A stretch of DNA of 64,000 bases, from sequence record MG592456.1. One strand, 5' to 3'. This document shows, piece after piece, positions 1,009 through 52,089 of the stretch (positions are counted from its first letter, which is position 1; each line of letters starts with the position of its first letter). The translations under genes were made by a program, and so were the position numbers. Under the pieces are notes generated by a model. That model was not told the DNA's origin. It searched no databases and was given only the letters and a program-made list of their open reading frames with translations.

Positions 1009-1033
1009 TTTTGGTTATTTAGTGAATCGGGTA

Positions 1034-26242: not shown

Positions 26243-27286
26243 CTATGAACGATATATAACGTTATTAGTGCCGAGTGTATCCCAATCTCCTGCACGAATC
26301 TTGTCACGCATAGCAGCATCAAAGGCAGAGTCGTTTTTGAACGCTGTGAGCGGTATAGTTATCGTGCCGCTTGTTTTAATCGCTAGCAGCTCTAGTTGCT
26401 CAAGCAAAGCACGATACTTATGCCCGTCATACTCAAACTTGCTAAACCAATACCCCATCGCTGAATACTTCGAGTCTATTGTAAAATCGACATCAAATCC
26501 ACGTAAGGCTCGCTTCAAATCACTCGGTTTACCATGAAATTTCTTTCTAGATGCGCTATGTTCAGCACCAGCACGTGCTAAAAGTCGTTTTTGTTGGTCT
26601 GCGGGGATATCATCCCACCCCTCGAAATTATCTCGAAATGCGTCCATGAAGATGTTGCCCTTCACGTGCGTTCTGAAGCGTGCTTTGGTGTCCGCAATGG
26701 CTTGTGTATAACGTGCGTTGATCTCATGTGAGTAGTTCATATACTCTTCGTGTGATGCTTGTGTGCCGTTGACGACATGGTCAAGCATTTTCTTGTCGAC
26801 CCATGCGTTATTCTTACCACGCAAAGTCTTAGTCCCTACTTGTATATCTTCATTATCGCCACTACGCCAGTTGTCATACGCATGTTGTAACTCATGACTT
26901 AGAGTACTTTCCATTGCCATTCGCTCGAAATCGAACATACCAGAGAGGGATTCTATGTCGCTCACGCCTGCCACGTTGAACGATAACTTAATCGATCCGA
27001 CGGCAGTTGGATGTGGGTTTGCAATTCGGCTGAGCCATGCGCCAAGTTCCATGTCACTTCCTGACTCGTCTAGTTTCATGAATACAGCGATGCCGGCTTC
27101 TAATAGTGAATTCAGTTCACGTTCTGTTGTTCTTATATTCAAGCGACTTGTGTTGACGGCAAGTCCTTGTTGTGAGAAGTCACCTGTTTGGATTGCTTGG
27201 TCTAATCGACGACTTAGCGCGTCCATGATTTCACGCGAAGCCTGTTCTATCGCGGCTTGTGATTGTACGTTTTCGAATATTATCAT
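26243..27286 (-). CDS. Zincin-like metalloprotease, minus-strand (late orientation)
   Basis: LSHELQHAYD (HExxH), downstream HEINAR; TCTAAATA upstream. Confidence 0.7.
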   Translation of the reverse strand: MIIFENVQSQAAIEQASREIMDALSRRLDQAIQTGDFSQQGLAVNTSRLNIRTTERELNSLLEAGIAVFMKLDESGSDMELGAWLSRIANPHPTAVGSIKLSFNVAGVSDIESLSGMFDFERMAMESTLSHELQHAYDNWRSGDNEDIQVGTKTLRGKNNAWVDKKMLDHVVNGTQASHEEYMNYSHEINARYTQAIADTKARFRTHVKGNIFMDAFRDNFEGWDDIPADQQKRLLARAGAEHSASRKKFHGKPSDLKRALRGFDVDFTIDSKYSAMGYWFSKFEYDGHKYRALLEQLELLAIKTSGTITIPLTAFKNDSAFDAAMRDKIRAGDWDTLGTNNVIYRS

Positions 27287-27303: not shown

Positions 27304-27332
27304 TTGACTGGATGATGTATTTAGATTAAGAT
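27304..27332 (+). promoter_or_regulatory. sigma70 promoter overlapping a divergent late-like TCTAAATA (27318-27325, minus)
   Basis: TTGACT-17-TAAGAT. Confidence 0.7.
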
Positions 27333-28832: not shown

Positions 28833-30305
28833 TTACTCTTTTCGAATGCGCAAACCGTTGATGTACCCCGTTGTTGAACCAACTTCAGCTTCAATAGTTA
28901 GCAATAGTGTACCAATTTCACCCACAGTGACGCCCGTGAATGTTAATATCTCGGGGATTGCTGGGTCAAGTAGATCAACAGCACATTGTATGTTCCCACT
29001 TTGTGCACCAACCGTGTACTTCCCAACACGGGTAGTTGACGTGCTATAAGCTCGACTGCCCGTCATAGAAACTTCATAACTTGCTGATGGGTCAAGCCCG
29101 TCGACTAACGTCACGTGCGCCATATCAGTCGAACAGTTTTCTTTATTCAGAGCATAGTTAAGTAATGAAATATCACTACTTGAGTGTCCGGCATACCCAT
29201 TTTTTCCACCAAAAAATCCATCATCAATTTCTAATGTCGCACCGGTGACTTTCGTCCCGTTGCGATTATAAAGTTCAATCGGCGTATTAGCAGCGCTAAT
29301 ACTGTTGCGGTGACGCCCCATCCATTTTGAGTGATATGCGCCAGAGTTAAATCGAACAACGACATCTTCAATATATTGTGTTTCTGGAATTGTTTGCTCA
29401 ATTCGATCACATATCAAATCGACAATATCACTACCTGCGACCAATCGCCCGGGGTCCGTCATATGTATGCCATCTAAATTGTATTCAGGGTGTTCGAATG
29501 TCCATTTGTGTAAGTTATATACAGGCTGACCGTCCTCAACCCAATTAGGGGTCAATTCTTGTATAGCGGGCAGCATATGATTGCTATTATACTCTTCCGC
29601 TGGCATTGACGCTGGTGGAATTCGATAACTGATTGGCGATGCTAAAACTTCAAACTGTGCAGCTAGCCCAGCTTGAATAATACCGCGGAAATTTGCCTCC
29701 ATCGAAGCTGCCGCTGTTGGGTACCCTTCAAATGCACTTGTTAGATCATTGCCGTTTGTATGCACAGTCATGAAATTCACACCATCACGTTGTTGTACTT
29801 CAGCGATGTGAGTTGACAAGGTCGACAGTGTAGTTGCTGATTTAGTTCCGCCAACAGCGCGGTCAAAAATCTTCGCATAAACACCTTTAGCAGCGAATAA
29901 ATCTTCAAGATGTTCTTCGTTGTCATATATTCCATGTTGAATTGACGCACCGACAGCTAGTATATTCAATGGTCCCGTTATCTGCATCTTTGGAGAATTA
30001 ACCACAACCTTGATTCGAAAAAATCGACTGTTGTGTGATTCTCGAATAAGCAGAGAATTATCACCGAATTGCGCACTTGACATCACTTCTTTAACCCAGT
30101 CTGGGGCATCTAATGTGATTTCTCGGGGAAGTTGTGATATAGTATGGTATGATTCTTGTATATTTGCGTATTTTTCAGCAATTCGAGTAAATGAAGTTGT
30201 CCTCATTGAATATCGGGGAAATCCCTGTATAATAAACGAATTGAGTACATCAGATGGCATCGTAAAATCAATAATATCCATTTCTTGATTGATAGGAATA
30301 GTCAT
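28833..30305 (-). CDS. Late protein with SGNH/GDSL hydrolase-like domain and C-terminal beta-rich domain
   Basis: ILAVGASIQ (block I variant), AVGG, HTNGND (block III), DGIHM (block V); exact late promoter. Confidence 0.7.
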   Translation of the reverse strand: MTIPINQEMDIIDFTMPSDVLNSFIIQGFPRYSMRTTSFTRIAEKYANIQESYHTISQLPREITLDAPDWVKEVMSSAQFGDNSLLIRESHNSRFFRIKVVVNSPKMQITGPLNILAVGASIQHGIYDNEEHLEDLFAAKGVYAKIFDRAVGGTKSATTLSTLSTHIAEVQQRDGVNFMTVHTNGNDLTSAFEGYPTAAASMEANFRGIIQAGLAAQFEVLASPISYRIPPASMPAEEYNSNHMLPAIQELTPNWVEDGQPVYNLHKWTFEHPEYNLDGIHMTDPGRLVAGSDIVDLICDRIEQTIPETQYIEDVVVRFNSGAYHSKWMGRHRNSISAANTPIELYNRNGTKVTGATLEIDDGFFGGKNGYAGHSSSDISLLNYALNKENCSTDMAHVTLVDGLDPSASYEVSMTGSRAYSTSTTRVGKYTVGAQSGNIQCAVDLLDPAIPEILTFTGVTVGEIGTLLLTIEAEVGSTTGYINGLRIRKE

Positions 30306-30347: not shown

Positions 30348-30355
30348 TATTTATA
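30348..30355 (-). promoter_or_regulatory. T4 late promoter TATAAATA
   Basis: Exact consensus on minus strand; divergent ACTAAATA at 30371-30378 (+). Confidence 0.85.
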
Positions 30356-48702: not shown

Positions 48703-49774
48703 AGTAAAACAAGCGATTGTTCGTGATGCAGCGAATGGTATGACTCAGAAAGACAACGCAGCGAAGAATGGTACATCGTGTACCACGCTTCGACGTGTAT
48801 TAGCAGAGCATCGCGAAGGCAAATTCAGCTTGAATACTGCAAAAAACGTTGCTTTGGCTGCTAAGTCGAAGCGAAAGGCGAAATCTCCTAAAGCCTCGAA
48901 GCCTAAGTCGAAGCGAAAGGCAAAGGCGAAAGCAGTTCCGTCGGCCGTTGCTGAAGCGTCGGATCAGTTCAATAAGAACTTAGCAGCAATGATTGCAGAG
49001 CCAAAGTCCGATACTGTTGCTGAAGTGTCTGCTAATATTGTTGACGATACGAAAGAGCCGGTCGAGAAGTTTGCATACGTGATTACGCCAATGAATGTGT
49101 CGTTTACCGTCGATGGTGATGCGTATTCTGCTGACATCACGACCAAGAACTATCAAGACATTGTGCTTGCATTACTGTCTGGCGACGGTGCAGGGGCGAT
49201 TGCATTACTTGATATTGCTACTGGCATTGAAGAATTCATGCAAGGTCACGTGAGTGTTAAAGGTGGTGTGGTCAAATACAGAAATCTAGCCGTTGATGGC
49301 GGCATGACAGGTCGTATTCTCGAAGCAATGGCAGCAGGTGATGAGACAAAGGTTGCAGTTATGGTTAAGTTCTTCGAGAACTTGATTCAGAATCCATCTG
49401 AGCGTGCTATTAACGAGCTGTATGGGTTCTTAGAAGCTACGGACATCGAATTGACTGATGATGGTCACTTCTTAGCGTTCAAGCGTGTTAGAGACAATTA
49501 CACTGACGTTCATAGTGGTAAGTTTGACAACTCACCGGGTCAAACTGTGTGGATGCAGCGACATCATGTTGATGACAACAAAGAACAGACTTGTTCAAGT
49601 GGGCTGCATGTATGCGCGAAGAGCTACTTGCCGTACTTCAGTGGTGCTCGTGTTGTCATGTGCAAGGTCAACCCGCGTGATGTAGTGTCTGTACCCGTCG
49701 ATTACAACAACGCGAAGCTCCGCTGTAATGAGTACACCGTGACTCATGAATGCAAGCCAAGCGAATACGCATAA
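48683..49774 (+). CDS. rIIB: rIIB protein
   Basis: FFENLIQNPS, ELYGFL, DGHFLAFKRV, CSSGLHV, PRDVVSVP. Confidence 0.93.
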   Translation: MVNLPIEVKQAIVRDAANGMTQKDNAAKNGTSCTTLRRVLAEHREGKFSLNTAKNVALAAKSKRKAKSPKASKPKSKRKAKAKAVPSAVAEASDQFNKNLAAMIAEPKSDTVAEVSANIVDDTKEPVEKFAYVITPMNVSFTVDGDAYSADITTKNYQDIVLALLSGDGAGAIALLDIATGIEEFMQGHVSVKGGVVKYRNLAVDGGMTGRILEAMAAGDETKVAVMVKFFENLIQNPSERAINELYGFLEATDIELTDDGHFLAFKRVRDNYTDVHSGKFDNSPGQTVWMQRHHVDDNKEQTCSSGLHVCAKSYLPYFSGARVVMCKVNPRDVVSVPVDYNNAKLRCNEYTVTHECKPSEYA

Positions 49775-50466: not shown

Positions 50467-50796
50467 ATGACTTCAATCAATACTGTAAAACAACTTATCG
50501 TTGCTGATGACGCTGCAATTGTTAATCAATCTGAATTTCGCATTGCATTTGCATTTGCATTCGGTTGTATGACCGAATCAGATCGTACTGTGTTTGTTGA
50601 TATTCATAAGCCACTACTTGTTGAATATTTCTGTCCAAGTTACTGCACATCCGATGAAGTCGTATTGAGTTCTGACGCTGTACTTGATGCGATTGCTTAC
50701 ATCAAAGAATGTCTAACCATTCATGACTATGCGCTTCTTAAAACCGACTTTCAATTCAACATCGCACAGCTAACAGGTGAATTCAATGAAGTTTAA
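50467..50796 (+). CDS. Hypothetical protein (start re-assigned)
   Basis: GAGAAAAATATG. Confidence 0.7.
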   Translation: MTSINTVKQLIVADDAAIVNQSEFRIAFAFAFGCMTESDRTVFVDIHKPLLVEYFCPSYCTSDEVVLSSDAVLDAIAYIKECLTIHDYALLKTDFQFNIAQLTGEFNEV

Positions 50797-51445
50797 GTCA
50801 TACGATAGCTTCGGTGTTGTTGAATACAACATTGGGATGATCTTTGCTGGGCTGATGGCTTTATCATTCACAATCGCACTGACAGCAGCATCATTGCTAT
50901 ATCGATTTGAATCTGGGGCTGATGGTTCGAACATCAACAGCGCTGGAGACGCTCTGTGGACGATTTGGATGTCAATGAGTACGATTGGGTTCGGGGATCA
51001 TTATCCCGTCACTGTGGGTGGCAGAGTCATCGTAGGGTCTATGTTTGCAGTCGGTGCTACTCTAATCGGGTTAAACATTGGTATTGCATCGGCATGGGTG
51101 ACATCTAAGTTCGACAAGAGCGTTCAAAATCGCGTGTTGAAGCTGCAAAGCGATACATTGATACAGAAGATAGATCGTCTTGAGACATTCTTGAATGTAG
51201 ATCAGACCGTTTACTTTGGCCCTGATGCTCATGGGATAGATGAAACTCTTAAACAGAAGCAATTTGACGTTTCGCAAGGTAAAGCGATTGTTACGCTTGG
51301 ACGTGATGACGGTGGCAGATTCATTGTAGCTACTAATACACAGACTGACAGCGGAAGAAACAAGCTGAAATGGATCAGTTACTTGAAATTTGACGACGCA
51401 TTAGACTTTTACAATGACGTAGCTGTCGAATTAGACGCAGTCTAA
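50786..51445 (+). CDS. KcsA-like 2-TM potassium channel
   Basis: TM1, pore helix GDALWTIWMSMS, filter TIGFGD, YPVT..GR, TM2, coiled coil. Confidence 0.9.
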   Translation: MKFKSYDSFGVVEYNIGMIFAGLMALSFTIALTAASLLYRFESGADGSNINSAGDALWTIWMSMSTIGFGDHYPVTVGGRVIVGSMFAVGATLIGLNIGIASAWVTSKFDKSVQNRVLKLQSDTLIQKIDRLETFLNVDQTVYFGPDAHGIDETLKQKQFDVSQGKAIVTLGRDDGGRFIVATNTQTDSGRNKLKWISYLKFDDALDFYNDVAVELDAV

Positions 51446-51450
51446 CAAAT

Positions 51451-51484
51451 CGCAGACAGTAAAAAGGAGTCCGAAGACTCCTTT
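51451..51484 (-). terminator. Minus-strand intrinsic terminator
   Basis: Minus strand: AAAGGAGTC-TTCG-GACTCC-TTTTT-ACTGTCTG. Confidence 0.8.
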
Positions 51485-51554
51485 AGTGAAAGCGCGACGA
51501 TGTTTAACCAATCGCAGTGACCGACTACTGCTTTCGCATAGTCGAACTCTCACT
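51461..51554 (-). ncRNA. Candidate structured small RNA (three-way junction plus terminator)
   Basis: P1 AGUGAGAG/CUUUCACU; P2 CGACUAUGC-GAAA-GCAGUAGUCG; P3 GCGAU..AUCGU; no ORF. Confidence 0.5.
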
Positions 51555-51663
51555 TATATTTAGAACTATTGTACGCCCTATTACTCATAAAGAAGTACAA
51601 TAATGAGACGTTCGCACTGAAAATTAACTGAAGTGCTTGAAAAACAACTAAAGGAAAAAAATC

Positions 51664-52089
51664 ATGACACCGAAATCAATCTTACGCGCCGCTAACACCG
51701 TAGTGAAAGAGATCAAAGTCTTTCAAGGCGAGCGCACCACTACAGTAGTGGGTCGTGCGGGATGTGGTAAGAACGCAATGCTAATGGGAATGCTGTGTCA
51801 ACGCGGTGCTAAAGATTCAGTGTGGATTTCAACTGAACAAACACCCCTGCAAGTAGCACCAAAGCTGCCGAAGGACAACATCGTGGTCGGCGCTAATGAC
51901 CCATCATTAGAAAGTATAATCAAGGCTGTCATGATCGCATTGTCGACGGGTCGTAAGTATATCTTCATCGAGCACATGGTCTCTTACCGTGAACTGAATG
52001 TATTAGAAGTATTAGAAGCAATCGTGCCTAACGATGTACAATTGTTCATCGGCATGGCAGCAAACAGAGACGGGAGCGTCAAATTATGA
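51664..52089 (+). CDS. P-loop-like protein (possible NrdC.10-like)
   Basis: VVGRAGCGKN; adjacent to nrdC.11-like gene. Confidence 0.55.
   Translation: MTPKSILRAANTVVKEIKVFQGERTTTVVGRAGCGKNAMLMGMLCQRGAKDSVWISTEQTPLQVAPKLPKDNIVVGANDPSLESIIKAVMIALSTGRKYIFIEHMVSYRELNVLEVLEAIVPNDVQLFIGMAANRDGSVKL

Follow-up and report, generated by a model that had tools for sequence, protein, structure and literature searches.

A conserved, previously undescribed structured RNA element of about 67 nt, confined in our searches to KVP40-like phages, is encoded on the minus strand of Vibrio phage 1.081.O._10N.286.52.C2 (MG592456.1; KVP40-like, Schizotequatrovirus). The stretch of 64,000 nucleotides of this record that was analysed will be denoted as the window. 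One copy of the element per genome is present in 48 phage records, which fall into seven sequence lineages. In 44 of these records the element forms the 5' leader of a gene for a two-transmembrane protein, phrog_14713; the gene is absent from exactly four records (MG592456, QD01, VS1 and VS2), in which the element directly abuts a strong hairpin terminator. The reading favoured here, with a probability of roughly 0.6, is that the RNA is real, is transcribed and retains a role.

The family thus defined is compact, with a clearly covarying closing helix and invariant unpaired motifs, and by sequence comparison it belongs to no described family. Structured regulatory RNAs have, to our knowledge, rarely been described in T4-type phages, and for the KVP40 group, which is used in aquaculture-vibrio work, no earlier one was found. 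The same RNA with the gene (44 genomes) and without it (4 genomes) provides a natural comparison, through which one can ask if a leader RNA is able to survive on its own once its gene has been lost.

Setting and fold of the window copy

The element sits in a 218-nt gap (51446-51663) separating two plus-strand genes, a potassium-channel gene and a gene referred to here as gp159. The preliminary description had all flanking genes on the plus strand, which holds for every annotated neighbour. The features of the locus are, in order of position:

50777-51445, plus: potassium-channel gene (Pfam Ion_trans_2, 1.8e-9; filter-like stretch TIGFGD)
51453-51460, minus: tail ACUGUCUG; a TGTCTG tail also follows four plus-strand terminators
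51461-51484, minus: intrinsic terminator with 9-bp stem, UUCG loop and U5, read from the sequence and folded in every prediction
51486-51553, minus: structured core of 68 nt, a three-way junction (minimum-energy and centroid folds)
51494-51498, minus: GUCGC, 3' strand of P3, in 7/7 lineages (raw sequences and hand alignment)
51494-51515, minus: P3, 7 bp, from the fold
51506-51511, minus: UUGGUU, in P3 and its loop; UUGGU is invariant in 7/7 lineages
51512-51522, minus: invariant GGUCACUGCGA (GGUCAC-N-GCGA), from comparison of the seven lineages
51521-51545, minus: P2, 10 bp, with GAAA loop at 51532-51535, from the fold
51546-51553 with 51486-51493, minus: P1, 8 bp, two of them wobbles (G-U and U-G), from the fold
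51551, minus: predicted transcription start (± 2 nt), sixth base past the promoter motif by T4-type geometry (PMC1524935)
51557-51563, minus: CTAAATA, late-promoter-like, invariant in the seven lineages; core of an octamer at 51557-51564
51664-52089, plus: gp159, the homologue of which in KVP40 is KVP40.0151

The channel gene is common to KVP40-group phages, its homologous stretch being unannotated in the KVP40 RefSeq record; no relatives of the channel protein were found in IMG/VR. On the element strand of the window no gene follows downstream, the phrog_14713 ORF being absent, and a 40-codon GTG ORF (51431-51553) reads through the terminator and is not conserved. No conserved peptide was found within the element across the lineages. 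ARAGORN detects 0 tRNA or tmRNA genes in the whole window. Comparison with Rfam by Infernal, proposed in the preliminary description as a check, matched no family: Rfam 15 (4227 models, with riboswitches, ribozymes, CRISPR repeats and phage RNAs among them) gives 0 matches in the window at gathering thresholds, just chance-level snoRNA and miRNA matches with E above 1 within 51300-51800, and no match on the element in four relatives at E up to 1. As a separate annotation, GenBank marks a 24-nt 'CRISPR spacer 1' in rIIB of MG592456 (110880-110903, corresponding to about 48880-48903 of the window).

A minus-strand three-way junction with an 8-bp P1 including a G-U pair, a GAAA-capped P2 and a P3 had been suggested from the window alone and is indeed present, with a length of 68 nt. 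The core ends one base upstream of the terminator hairpin on the minus strand. The predicted transcript (51553-51461, minus) folds with -38.5 kcal/mol and a z-score of -5.22, and the same segment folded as plus strand (51461-51553) yields -30.9 kcal/mol and a z-score of -4.57. Within the window copy the first two bases of GGUCACUGCGA close P2, GUCAC-U constitutes the unpaired junction J2/3 and GCGA opens P3. The motif is the same in 6/7 lineages, F86 carrying A at the seventh base. The combined pattern of GGUCACUGCGA, UUGGU and GUCGC has one match in the window versus none in 100 shuffles. Sites complementary to the exposed conserved motif show no excess in the window (12 with up to 2 mismatches versus 14.5 expected). 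An H-type pseudoknot (GUGAC:GUCAC plus UCGCA:UGCGA) was rejected on geometric reasoning, as no bases are available between its second and third strands.

Related elements, covariation and the downstream gene

A BLAST search of the window intergenic region against phages returned only the region itself and chance matches to the terminator hairpin. The family was located via the syntenic region of KVP40, in which the minus-strand gene KVP40.0150 precedes KVP40.0151 and the leader of KVP40.0150 has ordered motifs in common with the window element. Relatives were then collected by searching with the KVP40, D480 and F86 leaders, and the resulting lineages are the KVP40 group, the VH7D/ValKK3 group, QD01/VS1/VS2, F86, nt-1/CZ01, the D480/6E35 group and the window phage. 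Every copy lies on the strand opposite most genes, directly upstream of and divergent from the gp159 homologue. In 7/7 lineages CTAAATA is followed, after 3 to 27 bases, by P1 enclosing GGUCAC-N-GCGA, UUGGU and GUCGC. Six further lineages thus carry, in syntenic position, a homologue of the minus-strand structured RNA suspected from the window, with covariation in the closing helix.

With the window copy included, a covariance model detects just this one copy in 64 kb. A three-way-junction model built from the six relatives only (R2) aligns 51478-51557 (minus) end to end with 7.5 bits, which corresponds to an E-value of 9.2 over 64 kb and of 0.031 within the 218-nt gap, and a second relatives-only model (R1) gives 7.2 bits in a different register. 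With such weak scores the homology of the window copy rests mainly on synteny and motif order. The window copy is more diverged than those of D480 and F86 despite similar divergence of gp159, the identity of which is 33-52% among the outlying lineages. The motifs of the element and P1 are retained while the remaining intergenic region has lost BLAST similarity.

Wider searches agree with a narrow distribution. A loose 15-base pattern gave at least 120 chance matches in IMG/VR, none of them real among the matches listed, and an 18-base pattern recovered KVP40 and VH7D only. In metagenomes the 18-base pattern yielded 22 chance matches in coding DNA, and in 185,579 bacterial and archaeal genomes it yielded 15, about the number expected by chance; none of either set was confirmed by the model.

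Covariation among related phages, likewise proposed beforehand as a check, was assessed on the seven lineages and is found in P1. Model-based and hand alignments were used for the counts, because MAFFT misplaces P1 in three lineages. In the model-based alignment 6/6 P1 pairs show changes on both sides and 42/42 cells are paired, counts that come from only seven independent sequences, an alignment fitted to the model and a model that included the window copy. A hand alignment with the window copy in another register has both-sided changes in 4/6 P1 positions, none of them broken. The whole structure is 96% paired in the model-based alignment, column shuffles giving 89% and slid partners no more than 56%, and RNAalifold gives the same three-way junction. 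The interior helices display hardly any decisive covariation.

Two mutually exclusive folds, each retaining P1, are available to the interior. Fold A is a long hairpin in which GUGACUAUG pairs with UAUAGUCGC and the inner hairpin loop is UUGGUCAC; fold B is the three-way junction, with GUGAC paired to GUCAC and GCGA to UCGC. The energy gap between them is at most 0.5 kcal/mol in 5/7 lineages, 2.0 kcal/mol in F86 and 1.8 kcal/mol in the window copy. Near-equal exclusive folds, a feature of riboswitches and attenuators, are thus found in the family; an exchange between folds A and B that would remove a terminator is not seen, P1 staying in both. One or two both-sided changes favour each fold, and covariation is therefore undecided between them. 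In the window copy P2 has a new 3' strand and the GAAA cap, which favours fold B and leaves GUCAC unpaired. Since GGUCACUGCGA is invariant although its GUCAC is unpaired in the window, the motif must matter beyond pairing within P2.

The strand of the element is indicated by several observations. Among the P1 cells of the seven lineages G-U pairs are present and A-C never occurs, and the element strand is more stable than its reverse in 7/7 lineages, by 0.3 to 12.7 kcal/mol. U-runs and terminator tail likewise point along the element strand. The core is partly palindromic, as the reverse strand of the nt-1 element reaches 23 bits with the element model.

In five of the seven lineages the phrog_14713 ORF begins 14-36 nt downstream of the element on the same strand, after a U-rich run. 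The encoded protein has 158-188 residues and glycine-rich membrane segments, and its likeness to a holin family is weak and sub-threshold. Judged by gp159 identity, QD01 falls within the gene-bearing phages, and the outliers are the window phage, D480 and F86, two of which (D480 and F86) bear the gene. The gene was thus most simply lost twice, independently. Promoter motif, element and a terminator were retained in both ORF-less lineages; the window copy has lost the GUA that follows GCGA and the U-run that follows P1.

In the ORF-bearing relatives the folds show no uniform occlusion of the ribosome-binding site, the Shine-Dalgarno regions being mostly unpaired (0.45-0.78). UUGGU and the next two bases could pair with codons 2-4 of the ORF, over 9 bp in KVP40, where U and G of the AUG start codon take part, and over 6-8 bp in the other four ORF-bearing loci, with two possibly compensatory changes. 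This pairing appears only in the minimum-energy fold of KVP40 and is put forward as a weak idea. An origin as a homing-endonuclease remnant was rejected, the GIY-YIG gene of KVP40 being located 2 kb off and not adjacent.

Terminator and promoter motif

The terminator hairpin (51484-51463, minus) consists of the stem AAAGGAGUC/GACUCCUUU closed by a UUCG loop, and is followed by the U5 run at 51465-51461 (minus), of which three U belong to the stem. The preliminary description had assigned it to the minus strand on account of the UUCG loop, the U5 run and a (C/G)TGTCTG tail, and this assignment is confirmed: the hairpin has the make-up of an intrinsic terminator on the minus strand with U5, versus U3 only on the plus side of the stem. 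A simple terminator scan did not list it, because the scan extends the stem into the U-run and counts three U as stem.

TGTCTG follows within 10 nt of the T-run at 5/18 sites of the window that combine a hairpin with a T-run, namely 6012, 41269, 44252 and 53489 on the plus strand and 51453-51465 on the minus strand, and the hexamer has only 46 occurrences in the 64 kb, both strands counted. Being one-sided on hairpins able to act both ways, the tail marks orientation, which is minus in this case. Its consensus can be written as a T-run plus (G/AC)TGTCTG, and GGTCT is seen at three more sites (1950 plus, 32772 plus and 26219 minus). The tail is absent from those KVP40 and QD01 terminators that were inspected. 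In KVP40 a symmetric two-way terminator, A6-GGGAGC-ATTC-GCTCCC-T5, is located at 87415-87440 between the converging genes 0149 and 0150, and the minus-oriented terminator of the window may descend from a site of this type.

Upstream of the core the octamer TCTAAATA is found at 51557-51564 and again at 27318-27325, both on the minus strand, a bare count not above chance (2.2 expected). For its core CTAAATA, all 4/4 window copies are intergenic, compared with 11.5% of heptamers with identical base composition (p about 2e-4), and the motif is unchanged across the seven lineages although the flanks have diverged beyond alignment. The late-promoter consensus of T4 is TATAAATA at -13 to -6, and for the related Aeromonas phage Aeh1 a late consensus CTAAATA from -12 has been reported (PMC1524935; PMC2988020). 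TCTAAATA matches the T4 octamer in 7/8 positions, with C in place of the A of T4, as in Aeh1 (PMC1524935). By this analogy CTAAATA probably acts as a promoter here. The predicted start at 51551 lies within the 5' strand of P1 and would leave 6/8 P1 pairs. In nt-1 the predicted start is the first base of P1, and in five lineages 17-27 unstructured bases precede P1.

Of the two promoters considered in the preliminary description, TCTAAATA is retained, its core being conserved and intergenic, and TACAAT is discarded: it is an arm of a palindrome, has a hexamer spacing of 20 nt and lacks conservation among the relatives. The palindrome itself (ATTGTAC-N20-GTACAAT, 51566-51604) lies upstream of CTAAATA, is unconserved in the relatives, contains TTGTAC and TACAAT hexamers on either strand and can form a 10-bp hairpin on either strand. 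The hairpin containing TACAAT extends over 51565-51604. Possible roles of the palindrome are a hairpin at the 5' end of the gp159 mRNA and a site for protein binding.

Proposed role and alternative explanations

In the proposed mechanism the T4-type late-promoter-like CTAAATA would start a noncoding RNA of about 91 nt, running from 51551 to about 51461 (minus) and ending at its own intrinsic terminator, probably late in infection. This RNA would be an ORF-less copy of the 5' leader of KVP40-like vibriophages, and its P1-closed core would present conserved unpaired bases to a partner. Two near-equal folds, a U-run and a gene 14-36 nt further on point to a cis-acting leader in the relatives, which would act in an attenuator-like or factor-binding manner on a late phrog_14713 gene; helix and U-run would halt a fraction of the transcripts ahead of the gene, or the leader would set its expression in another way. 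In the window phage the gene is gone, and the GAAA-capped P2 would lock the three-way junction and expose GUCAC. The RNA would persist because it still binds the same partner, which may be a protein, a small ligand or another RNA, and it would work stand-alone and late. Of the dedicated noncoding RNA put forward in the preliminary description, the structured minus-strand RNA with its own promoter-like motif and terminator stands, whereas its dedicated nature does not, the window RNA being an ORF-less copy of what is a 5' leader in 44/48 records.

A more far-reaching version, tentative and as a whole unlikely, is a two-state phage RNA switch that would sense a late-infection signal (a phage or host protein, or a metabolite) via GGUCAC/UUGGU and gate a holin-like protein beside rIIA/rIIB; the sensor would have outlived the gene and titrate its partner in trans.

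The window copy might also be a decaying relic, i.e. promoter, leader and old terminator left behind after deletion of the gene, with an RNA that is perhaps made and functionless. The ORF is most simply ancestral, being present in 5/7 lineages including the outliers D480 and F86, and the window copy is the most diverged, has lost both the GUA after GCGA and the post-P1 U-run and scores weakly with relatives-only models. Its divergence above that of the D480 and F86 copies, together with this weak score, speaks for relaxed constraint, as would fit loss of the ORF. However, P1 of the window copy is 8/8 paired via several both-sided changes, P2 has 10 bp and a GAAA cap, and the z-score is -5.2. 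The 11-nt motif, UUGGU, GUCGC and CTAAATA are intact in a gap that is otherwise without similarity, and QD01/VS1/VS2 likewise retained promoter, element and terminator after ORF loss. Intact helices, intact motifs and a second ORF-less lineage argue that the window copy is still under selection, and a mere relic appears unlikely, if far from negligible. Transcription in the antisense direction could alternatively be what counts, the RNA pairing with read-through transcripts from the channel gene to gp159 and marking them for late cleavage, with its fold secondary. The plus-side U3 makes the hairpin a poor plus-strand terminator, so that plus transcripts probably cross the region, and a late minus RNA would be fully complementary to them; in T4-type phages late promoters are set against early genes, and a second orphan CTAAATA (1016-1022) points into a plus-strand gene. 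But the covarying P1 and the invariant unpaired motifs are left unexplained by pairing with such transcripts, and in KVP40 the two-way terminator separates the plus-strand gene from the locus, so that no plus transcript is there to pair with, which renders a purely antisense role improbable.

That no minus-strand RNA is made at all seems distinctly improbable. The hairpin would then end the channel-gene transcript and the inverted repeats would be DNA sites serving the gp159 gene as promoter or for regulator binding. A sigma-70-like TTCGCA-16-TATATT (51533-51560, plus) does overlap the element, the plus strand folds well too (z -4.6), and the element is partly palindromic, as seen from the 23 bits of the nt-1 reverse strand. 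Yet the G-U and U-G wobbles would turn into A-C mismatches on the plus strand, the element strand is the stabler one in 7/7 lineages, U-run and tail motif point to minus, and the plus promoter of the relatives lies elsewhere (TTGACT-17-TATCAT). Moreover, five lineages have a same-strand ORF 14-36 nt further on, and the element strand must therefore be transcribed there. The layout of KVP40 is also that of classical attenuators, with a 13-codon ORF whose AUG lies 8 nt past GAGGG, within the exclusive folds and followed by a U-run, as if a short ORF were translated and the ribosome position picked the fold, or as if the locus were a tiny protein gene. This reading is barely credible and was rejected because the ORF is in different frames, three of them, among the lineages. 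In addition, D480 is without AUG, the ORF of the window copy has 4 codons, 19 successive bases are invariant with no synonymous variation, and the GTG ORF 51431-51553 crosses the terminator and is unconserved.

Some terminated leader or riboswitch RNAs are known to serve as small RNAs as well, such as the SAM-riboswitch RNAs SreA/SreB of Listeria and the B12-riboswitch RNAs EutX/Rli55, and are probably the nearest analogues of the element. Like these, a helix-closed 5' leader plus terminator would give a short stable RNA, and the element occurs with and without a downstream gene. Unlike them, it has no Rfam riboswitch match, P1 is part of both folds with no classical terminator/antiterminator exchange visible, and it is phage-encoded with a late-type promoter motif. 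The motif resembles T4-type late units with gp55 promoters in being conserved, in having the proper upstream spacing and in lying on the other strand from the early genes, and differs from them in that the window motif drives no protein-coding gene and has C where T4 has A. The stable RNAs C and D of T4 are encoded among its clustered tRNA genes, and their processing accompanies that of the tRNAs. The analogy to them drawn in the preliminary description extends to a small phage RNA and is otherwise unsupported, as the window is without a tRNA gene (ARAGORN), no Rfam match was obtained and the element carries a promoter motif and a terminator of its own. Structured 5' ends also stabilise mRNAs, as in ompA-type 5' hairpins. 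A stable helix at or near the transcript 5' end is shared with them, the predicted start being at P1 in nt-1 and the window, whereas such stabilisers need no invariant unpaired motifs and five lineages have the unstructured bases ahead of P1. Taken with the gene-bearing relatives, the element points to a membrane protein beside the rII genes, with late expression predicted, and to CTAAATA as a predicted working promoter variant in the window phage.

Similar motifs occur elsewhere in the window. CTAAATA at 27318-27324 (minus) is 32 nt ahead of the minus-strand gene 26243-27286 (phrog_15811), and TATAAATA at 30348-30355 (minus) is 43 nt ahead of the minus-strand gene 28833-30305; from their positions both look like late promoters of the few minus-strand genes. 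The copy at 1016-1022 (minus) is located in a gap (1009-1112) with no ORF downstream, and the 133 nt that follow it are not unusually structured (z -0.3). It has the context CACTAAATA, as in five element lineages, points into the 3' end of the plus-strand gene 454-1008, and may be a late antisense start.
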